61,530 nucleotides of DNA. Origin: Macrostomum lignano (Eukaryota). Under the pieces are notes generated by a model that was not told where the DNA came from, searched no databases, and saw nothing but the letters and a program-made list of their open reading frames with translations. The position numbers and the translations under genes are program-made. The stretch lies in contig NIVC01004080.1 in NCBI GenBank assembly GCA_002269645.1, positions 1 to 61,530 on the forward strand, written 5' to 3'. Positions 8,837 through 9,294 of this stretch are shown here, piece after piece. Numbering within the stretch: position 1 is the stretch's first letter; each line of letters opens with the position of its first letter.

Positions 8837-9294
8837 ATGGTGCAACTGCAGCTTCTCCTGATGTTTCTCATTCTCTCAGACAGTTTTGGTGAGTCCTTGG
8901 TTTGATTGAATGATTTGCTAGCTTTTTTACGCTATTCCAAGAAATTGCCAGTCATTGATGATAGAAATTGCAAAACATGATTGATTAAATGAGGTATACA
9001 AGTTGTCACCAGATTCCAACGCGAGTTAAGAGTTTTGTTGCTGAAGAGGATCATGTGAACTTATGCTCATGCATCATGCTGCAATATGTCAAAAAACTAA
9101 AGATTAAAGCCAGCTTGCACCTGTGCACCAACTACATTATAGTTTCGGAGGCCGCCGTCACGGACAAGACCATGTACTGCGCTCCGCTGGGCACTTCGTG
9201 CGACGACTTTTACGTTCGCTGCTGCGTGGGCCAGTGCAAATTCGCTTTTGTGTTTGACAATAAGCCAGTTTACATTTGCTCGAGACAAGACTAA
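8837..9294 (+). CDS. Secreted six-cysteine knottin-like (ICK, C-C-CC-C-C) peptide, 67 aa, 2 exons
   Basis: Exon 1 (8837..8888) encodes MVQLQLLLMFLILSDSF+G and ends at a GTGAGT donor. Exon 2 (9143..9294) follows a TAG acceptor in the matching phase 1. The spliced product is MVQLQLLLMFLILSDSFVSEAAVTDKTMYCAPLGTSCDDFYVRCCVGQCKFAFVFDNKPVYICSRQD: a signal-peptide-like N-terminus plus C-x6-C-x6-CC-x3-C-x13-C. Confidence 0.75.

Follow-up and report, generated by a model that had tools for sequence, protein, structure and literature searches.

A small two-exon gene, Mlig014969, lies on the forward strand at positions 8837-9294 of contig NIVC01004080.1 from the flatworm Macrostomum lignano (assembly GCA_002269645.1), the complete 61,530-bp contig being referred to here as the window. 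Joining its two coding exons (Table 1) produces a coding sequence (CDS) of 204 nt, which by scripted translation as well as by direct reading gives a 67-aa product, MVQLQLLLMFLILSDSFVSEAAVTDKTMYCAPLGTSCDDFYVRCCVGQCKFAFVFDNKPVYICSRQD, with exactly six cysteines in the order C-x6-C-x6-CC-x3-C-x13-C (spacing 6/6/0/3/13) at 9178-9279. Directly established are the exon structure and reading frame, the framework of cysteines, and the identity with a deposited gene model. We consider it probable that Mlig014969 is a real, transcribed gene for a secreted precursor, most likely with a knottin core and an extracellular target, the knottin classification itself being plausible but unproven.

An earlier note, made from the DNA letters alone, had proposed this exon-intron arrangement, its phase and the 67-aa product, all of which are borne out to the base, and had recognized the six-cysteine framework of inhibitor cystine knot (ICK) type, which is present with exactly that spacing. 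It was also right that the list of open reading frames (ORFs) offers only a 101-aa frame over the cysteine-rich part (8989-9294, the sole item there). We rejected this unspliced ORF as the product, as it carries no signal peptide and differs from the annotated CDS. The initiator ATG (8837-8839) stands in a good context, GACGGAATGG, where position -3 is a purine and position +4 a G. No other ATG of this frame lies between it and the preceding in-frame stop. From this ATG on, exon 1 encodes the n- and h-region of the predicted signal peptide. Further upstream, a strong acceptor-like site (cttacttttcag followed by g) is found at 8630-8642, about 195 nt 5' of the ATG, and a 55-aa upstream ORF (8694-8861) runs out of frame with the peptide CDS; an mRNA trans-spliced at that site, or started as far 5' as it, would carry upstream ATGs. 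On the 3' side, the first 600 nt after the stop contain no canonical AATAAA, the only related motif being CATAAA at 9481. The telomere-like (CCCTAA)3 block that begins on the base after the stop and passes into degenerate CCTAAT units probably belongs to the 3' untranslated region. It is unchanged in all four genomic copies of the gene (no difference among them is listed for 9091-9404). Towards the opposite end of the contig, at 60015-60343, lies an 18-bp satellite (GATGGGATTAGGGTTGGA, about 18 copies) that includes the complementary TTAGGG motif.

Table 1. Coordinates of the peptide gene, its neighbours and the main tandem arrays in the window.
Feature	Position	Strand	Remarks
Coding exon 1	8837..8888	+	52 nt; start codon + 17 1/3 codons (MVQLQLLLMFLILSDSF + G of codon 18)
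Intron	8889..9142	+	254 nt, phase 1; GTGAGT donor 8889-8894; acceptor ...cattaTAG, last base 9142
Coding exon 2	9143..9294	+	signal-peptide end, mature peptide and TAA stop
Signal-peptide end VSEA	to 9153	+	exon 2
Predicted mature peptide	9154-9291	+	46 aa; exon 2
TAA stop	9292-9294	+	exon 2
(CCCTAA)3 telomere-like repeat	9295..9312	+	followed by degenerate CCTAAT units
ABCA-like transporter	2537-5533, 5736-7283	-	two long ORFs, short gap; ABC_tran E=3e-34, ABC2_membrane_3
Rhodopsin-family G protein-coupled receptor, divergent sequence	10179-11288	-	single 369-aa ORF; 7tm_1 E=3e-10; NPLLY motif
(CAAT)324	2-1280		tandem array at the very start of the contig
19/38-bp C-rich satellite	21159-23077		tandem array
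21-bp satellite	31055-33669		tandem array, 124 copies
20-bp satellite	35744-37221		tandem array
(TCTG)185	53725-54464		tandem array
21-bp A-rich satellite	57511-58596		tandem array

The gene had been described in the earlier note as hidden, which it is not, since a model with the same 67-aa CDS and boundaries was already deposited under four accessions. The GenBank gene spans exactly 8837-9294, its CDS boundaries are identical to those of the two-exon model, and a protein search returned one match, with 100% identity over 100% of the length, to hypothetical protein BOX15_Mlig014969g3 of Macrostomum lignano (deposited as BOX15_Mlig014969g3/g5; PAA48689.1, PAA52302.1, PAA54461.1, PAA86134.1; UniRef A0A267DJH6). 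The guess of a flatworm origin was thus correct. The GenBank annotation of this assembly was built only from transcript evidence, through a genome-guided transcriptome assembly of RNA sequencing (RNA-seq) reads that used StringTie/TACO, drew on a de novo transcriptome mapped to the genome and took trans-splicing and poly(A) reads as evidence for transcript boundaries (PMC5730564). The public RNA-seq data behind it are SRP082513 and SRR2682326. The splice junction is therefore transcript-supported by construction, and the support for junction 8888^9143, which comes through the annotation method, is indirect but real.

Three further contigs hold the same gene, giving four near-identical contigs in total. 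In an alignment of 3.5 kb around each of the four, non-coding DNA included, the copies differ by 0.14-0.49% substitutions. The single coding difference, 8842 G>T in one copy (L004), is synonymous. In the intron the copies differ by a 41-bp deletion, one substitution and two indels of a single base each, while every copy keeps an uninterrupted reading frame and encodes the identical protein. Such low divergence fits the recent polyploidy reported in M. lignano (PMC5730564, PMC10733133).

Several features of the N-terminus point to secretion. The stretch LQLLLMFLIL (residues 4-13) is a strongly hydrophobic core, the Kyte-Doolittle mean over nine residues peaking at 3.04 for residues 6-14, and small residues that fit the -3/-1 rule follow it, with candidate cleavage positions after S14, S16 and A21, that between SEA and AV being the most canonical. 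Judged by sequence, this succession of a hydrophobic h-region and small residues at -3/-1 is that of a secretory protein; furthermore, the AlphaFold model of the precursor places a helix at residues 3-20. The signal peptide cut near SEA and AV anticipated by the earlier note is accordingly plausible as a prediction. No propeptide, dibasic site or C-terminal Gly/amidation signal was found in the 67-aa precursor, and only eight residues (AVTDKTMY) separate the predicted cleavage site from the first cysteine. The predicted 46-aa mature peptide is neutral (five K+R against five D+E, isoelectric point about 6.2), relatively hydrophobic and aromatic.

The ICK consensus, reported by Norton and Pallaghy in 1998 as CX3-7CX3-6CX0-5CX1-4CX4-13C, matches the peptide as a regular expression at 9178-9279, so that its spacing is compatible with that of a knottin. 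Single-sequence AlphaFold prediction of the mature peptide gave five models with mean predicted local distance difference test (pLDDT) values of 77.7, 73.0, 55.0, 54.4 and 53.8, the best of which folds the aromatic last loop into a beta-hairpin (mature residues 27-34 and 37-43). The hairpin, which the earlier note had suggested for this loop, is predicted again, at lower confidence, in the full-precursor model (pLDDT 57.8). A Foldseek comparison with the PDB returned 14 matches, all with E>1, 12 of which were ICK toxins; these neighbours, with TM scores (query) of 0.38-0.58 and best root-mean-square deviations of 1.8-2.8 A, include spider toxins, DkTx, psalmotoxin, a remipede double-ICK toxin and a sea-anemone peptide. 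Such a pattern is what would be expected for a knottin, though with a chain this short it does not reach statistical significance. The evidence on three-dimensional similarity to solved knottins is divided, as ICK toxins predominate among the neighbours while the E-values are non-significant and several models are of low confidence. Taken together with the N-terminal features above and the spacing and coding statistics below, it lends moderate support to a secreted knottin-like peptide.

The cysteine pattern was compared with chance expectation in 200 dinucleotide-Markov simulations of the whole window. The exact spacing appeared in none of the 200 simulated windows, and the general ICK regular expression occurred 0.22 times per simulated window. 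In the real sequence this expression has five other matches, four of which come from translated simple or tandem repeats and one from a short 18-aa stretch on the minus strand (14192-14245). The cysteine-pattern feature exceeds chance. Coding statistics are likewise gene-like, with a G+C content at third codon positions (GC3) of 0.66 for the CDS, compared with 0.61-0.68 for the neighbouring ABC-transporter ORFs and 0.76 for the receptor ORF, and a G+C content of 0.37 in the intron against 0.53 in exon 2.

These figures bear on the explanation that the locus yields a transcript specific to this lineage, with an ORF that was never selected for a function. The hydrophobic N-terminus and the arrangement of cysteines would then be fortuitous, and the annotated CDS would be no more than the longest ORF of the assembled transcript. 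A GenBank entry that reads only "hypothetical protein", four copies too similar to carry a signal of purifying selection, and a lack of homologues in the collections searched would all fit this explanation; yet it must also accommodate an exact ICK spacing never reached by chance, a signal-like exon joined in phase through canonical GT-AG signals, the gene-like GC3, the good start context with its in-frame stop upstream, an AlphaFold model that converges on an ICK-like shape, and the suggestive non-cysteine similarity to a delta-conotoxin described below. We regard it as improbable.

The case for a secreted knottin with an extracellular target has nevertheless to be set against a number of observations, which we gather here as counting against it. 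Only the protein itself was recovered in an exhaustive HMMER search of 1.84 billion representative proteins (E<=0.001) and in a word-index search of 5.8 billion clusters; a scan of the metagenomes of the Joint Genome Institute (JGI) gave no homologue, and hmmscan against Pfam-A (E<=10) assigned neither the precursor nor the mature peptide to a family. The protein collections searched may hold no other Macrostomum species. The identical proteins of the four copies are uninformative on selection, because the copies are less than 0.5% divergent even in non-coding DNA. The transcript support is indirect; the structure prediction is not robust, with two of the five models above a pLDDT of 70 and the precursor at 57.8; and every Foldseek E-value exceeds 1. 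Finally, the gene identifier was looked for in searchable full texts and in Macrostomum supplementary data, in part together with sequence strings, and neither an occurrence nor an expression site was found.

As far as the searches reach, the gene would be restricted to the M. lignano lineage. Paralogues, for which the earlier note had suggested looking, were not found in the window by tblastn or by six-frame regular-expression matching; pattern matches at 31986-32751, 25301-25416 and 54275-54349 were discarded as tandem-repeat artefacts. What the evidence describes is an ordinary yet genuine lineage-restricted gene for a cysteine-rich secretory peptide.

If the product is a secreted knottin, its N-terminal 21 residues or so would direct the precursor into the endoplasmic reticulum and would then be removed, most likely between SEA and AV (alternatively after S14 or S16). 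The released peptide of about 46 aa, roughly neutral and rather hydrophobic, would form three disulfides and most likely adopt an ICK core from which the long aromatic beta-hairpin (KFAFVFDNKPVYI) projects, and through this hydrophobic hairpin it may bind a membrane protein or another extracellular target. The proposal of target binding is drawn from other knottins with a hydrophobic face; on this analogy the peptide would most likely act as a secreted mini-protein, stabilised by disulfides, whose target lies outside the cell or in its membrane. A role as a venom, antimicrobial or signalling peptide is speculation. Among these, a cationic antimicrobial mode is unlikely because the predicted mature peptide is neutral, and a diversified venom arsenal is unlikely because there is one invariant sequence and no paralogues were found.

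M. lignano is a free-living, diatom-feeding flatworm with no known venom apparatus, and it is not known as a venomous predator. This, together with the orphan status and small size of the secreted protein, speaks for a different kind of product, namely a disulfide-rich but non-toxin-like secretion, knotted or not, of fast-evolving reproductive (prostate or seminal-fluid) or other gland origin. Because small orphan secreted proteins are known in Macrostomum, we take such a role as a serious alternative, albeit a rather unlikely one. The Macrostomum literature describes many small, fast-evolving, reproduction-related secreted proteins (PMC5977470, PMC7336406). Neither the identifier nor the sequence was found in the supplements of the seminal-fluid screen or of the positional RNA-seq study, which argues weakly against the alternative, as other transcript identifiers are used there.

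The peptide gene is flanked by two genes on the opposite strand. The ABCA-like transporter is divergent from it, and copy L004 has the same annotated neighbour, whose product is 1664 aa long. The ORF of the G protein-coupled receptor (GPCR), whose nearest solved relative is the fMet-Leu-Phe receptor (a weak match, E=9e-4), is convergent with it at about 0.9 kb. The adjacency of a secreted-peptide gene and an orphan receptor may be coincidental, and nothing was found that links either neighbour functionally to the peptide gene. Rfam and tRNA scans of the window returned nothing.

Outside these genes, satellite arrays dominate the contig. It is unusually rich in long tandem arrays (Table 1), which account for most of the long ORFs and for the spurious cysteine-pattern matches in the six-frame translation. 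One 40-bp satellite occurs in two arrays of opposite orientation, about 6 kb apart, at 40297-41108 and 46996-49096 (20 and 52 copies, respectively). Compared by eye from the consensus units of Tandem Repeats Finder, the units are near reverse complements with the common core ATGGATTGCTAATCTA. A (TGAC)139 microsatellite (46200-46756) lies between the two arrays.

The cysteine framework of the flatworm peptide, C-C-CC-C-C, is shared with framework VI/VII conotoxins such as delta-conotoxin Am2766 (PDB 1yz2) and with spider ICK toxins (PDB 2h1z, 2mf3 and 6ax2), and like these venom peptides it combines loop lengths within the classical ICK consensus with a (predicted) secretory precursor. Am2766 is also its best match by sequence in the PDB (phmmer, E=0.012), over an alignment of 24 residues, 12 of them identical, including seven that are not cysteines; in residues 9-32 the two have G, S, D, F, V, G and F in common in addition to cysteines. 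Permuting all residues but the cysteines gives this similarity (7/19 non-cysteine identities) a P of about 7.5e-5 for a single comparison. No correction for how many ICK chains were compared enters this value, and given that the PDB contains hundreds of them, the resemblance is suggestive only. A hydrophobic surface is typical of delta-conotoxins and gating-modifier toxins, and the flatworm peptide shares it. In contrast, the last loop has three residues in Am2766 and 13 in the flatworm peptide, and venom ICK toxins form diversified multigene families, whereas the flatworm gene encodes a single invariant sequence. Membership of the O-superfamily of conotoxins, as usually defined, was rejected, given the absence of a Pfam profile match (E<=10) and of a propeptide and the difference in the last loop.

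It seems to us highly unlikely that the peptide is a truly knotted ICK ligand acting on ion channels or receptors and owes its non-cysteine resemblance to delta-conotoxins to common descent. Were it so, the framework VI/VII conotoxin scaffold would already have been present in the spiralian ancestor, and a free-living, non-venomous and genetically manipulable flatworm model would secrete a toxin-like peptide.

A comparison closer to home is offered by UPF0506, a platyhelminth-restricted family with the knottin fold, found in Schistosoma and in the secretome of Schistocephalus solidus, whose repeated motifs are C-x6-C-x7-CC-x4-C-x9-C and C-x6-C-x5-CC-x3-C-x4-C (PMC8400842). Like the product of Mlig014969, these proteins are platyhelminth, secreted and cysteine-rich, have the same type of C-C-CC-C-C framework and are without an assigned function; they differ in having tandem domains with a shorter last loop, whereas the peptide has a single domain and a much longer one. 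We did not retain membership of this family, there being no Pfam match at E<=10, a threshold at which the HMMER filters may hide very weak matches.

In another spiralian, the C-C-CC-C-C peptides of the Mytilus CRP-I group are AlphaFold-predicted knottins with a putative role in defence, their function being unresolved despite assays (PMC10138031). They resemble the flatworm peptide as non-venom products with the same type of cysteine framework. Their cysteine array is located in exon 4 and they form large families with presence/absence variation (PMC10138031), in contrast to two coding exons, no detected family and no detected sequence similarity for the flatworm gene. By analogy with these defence peptides, Mlig014969 might encode a knottin that acts as an antimicrobial or immune effector. 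Set against this are its neutral charge, unlike that of cationic antimicrobial peptides, its lack of multigene diversification, and the finding that the CRP-I peptide assayed had no significant antimicrobial or protease-inhibitor activity (PMC10138031), and we give such a role very little credence.

As it stands, the preferred reading, that of a secreted peptide with a knottin core, would concern one of many small, uncharacterised secreted proteins that the M. lignano genome encodes. As the gene model is already public, what is added here lies only in its structural classification. If the fold and secretion are confirmed, a knottin-type peptide would become available in a flatworm amenable to transgenesis and RNA interference, which would be useful for studying the roles of knottins outside venoms. 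Knottin-fold secreted peptides being known in flatworms (UPF0506) and mussels (CRP-I), the M. lignano peptide does not represent a new kind; if confirmed, it would allow us to ask whether knottin-fold proteins of parasites, such as UPF0506, have free-living counterparts.
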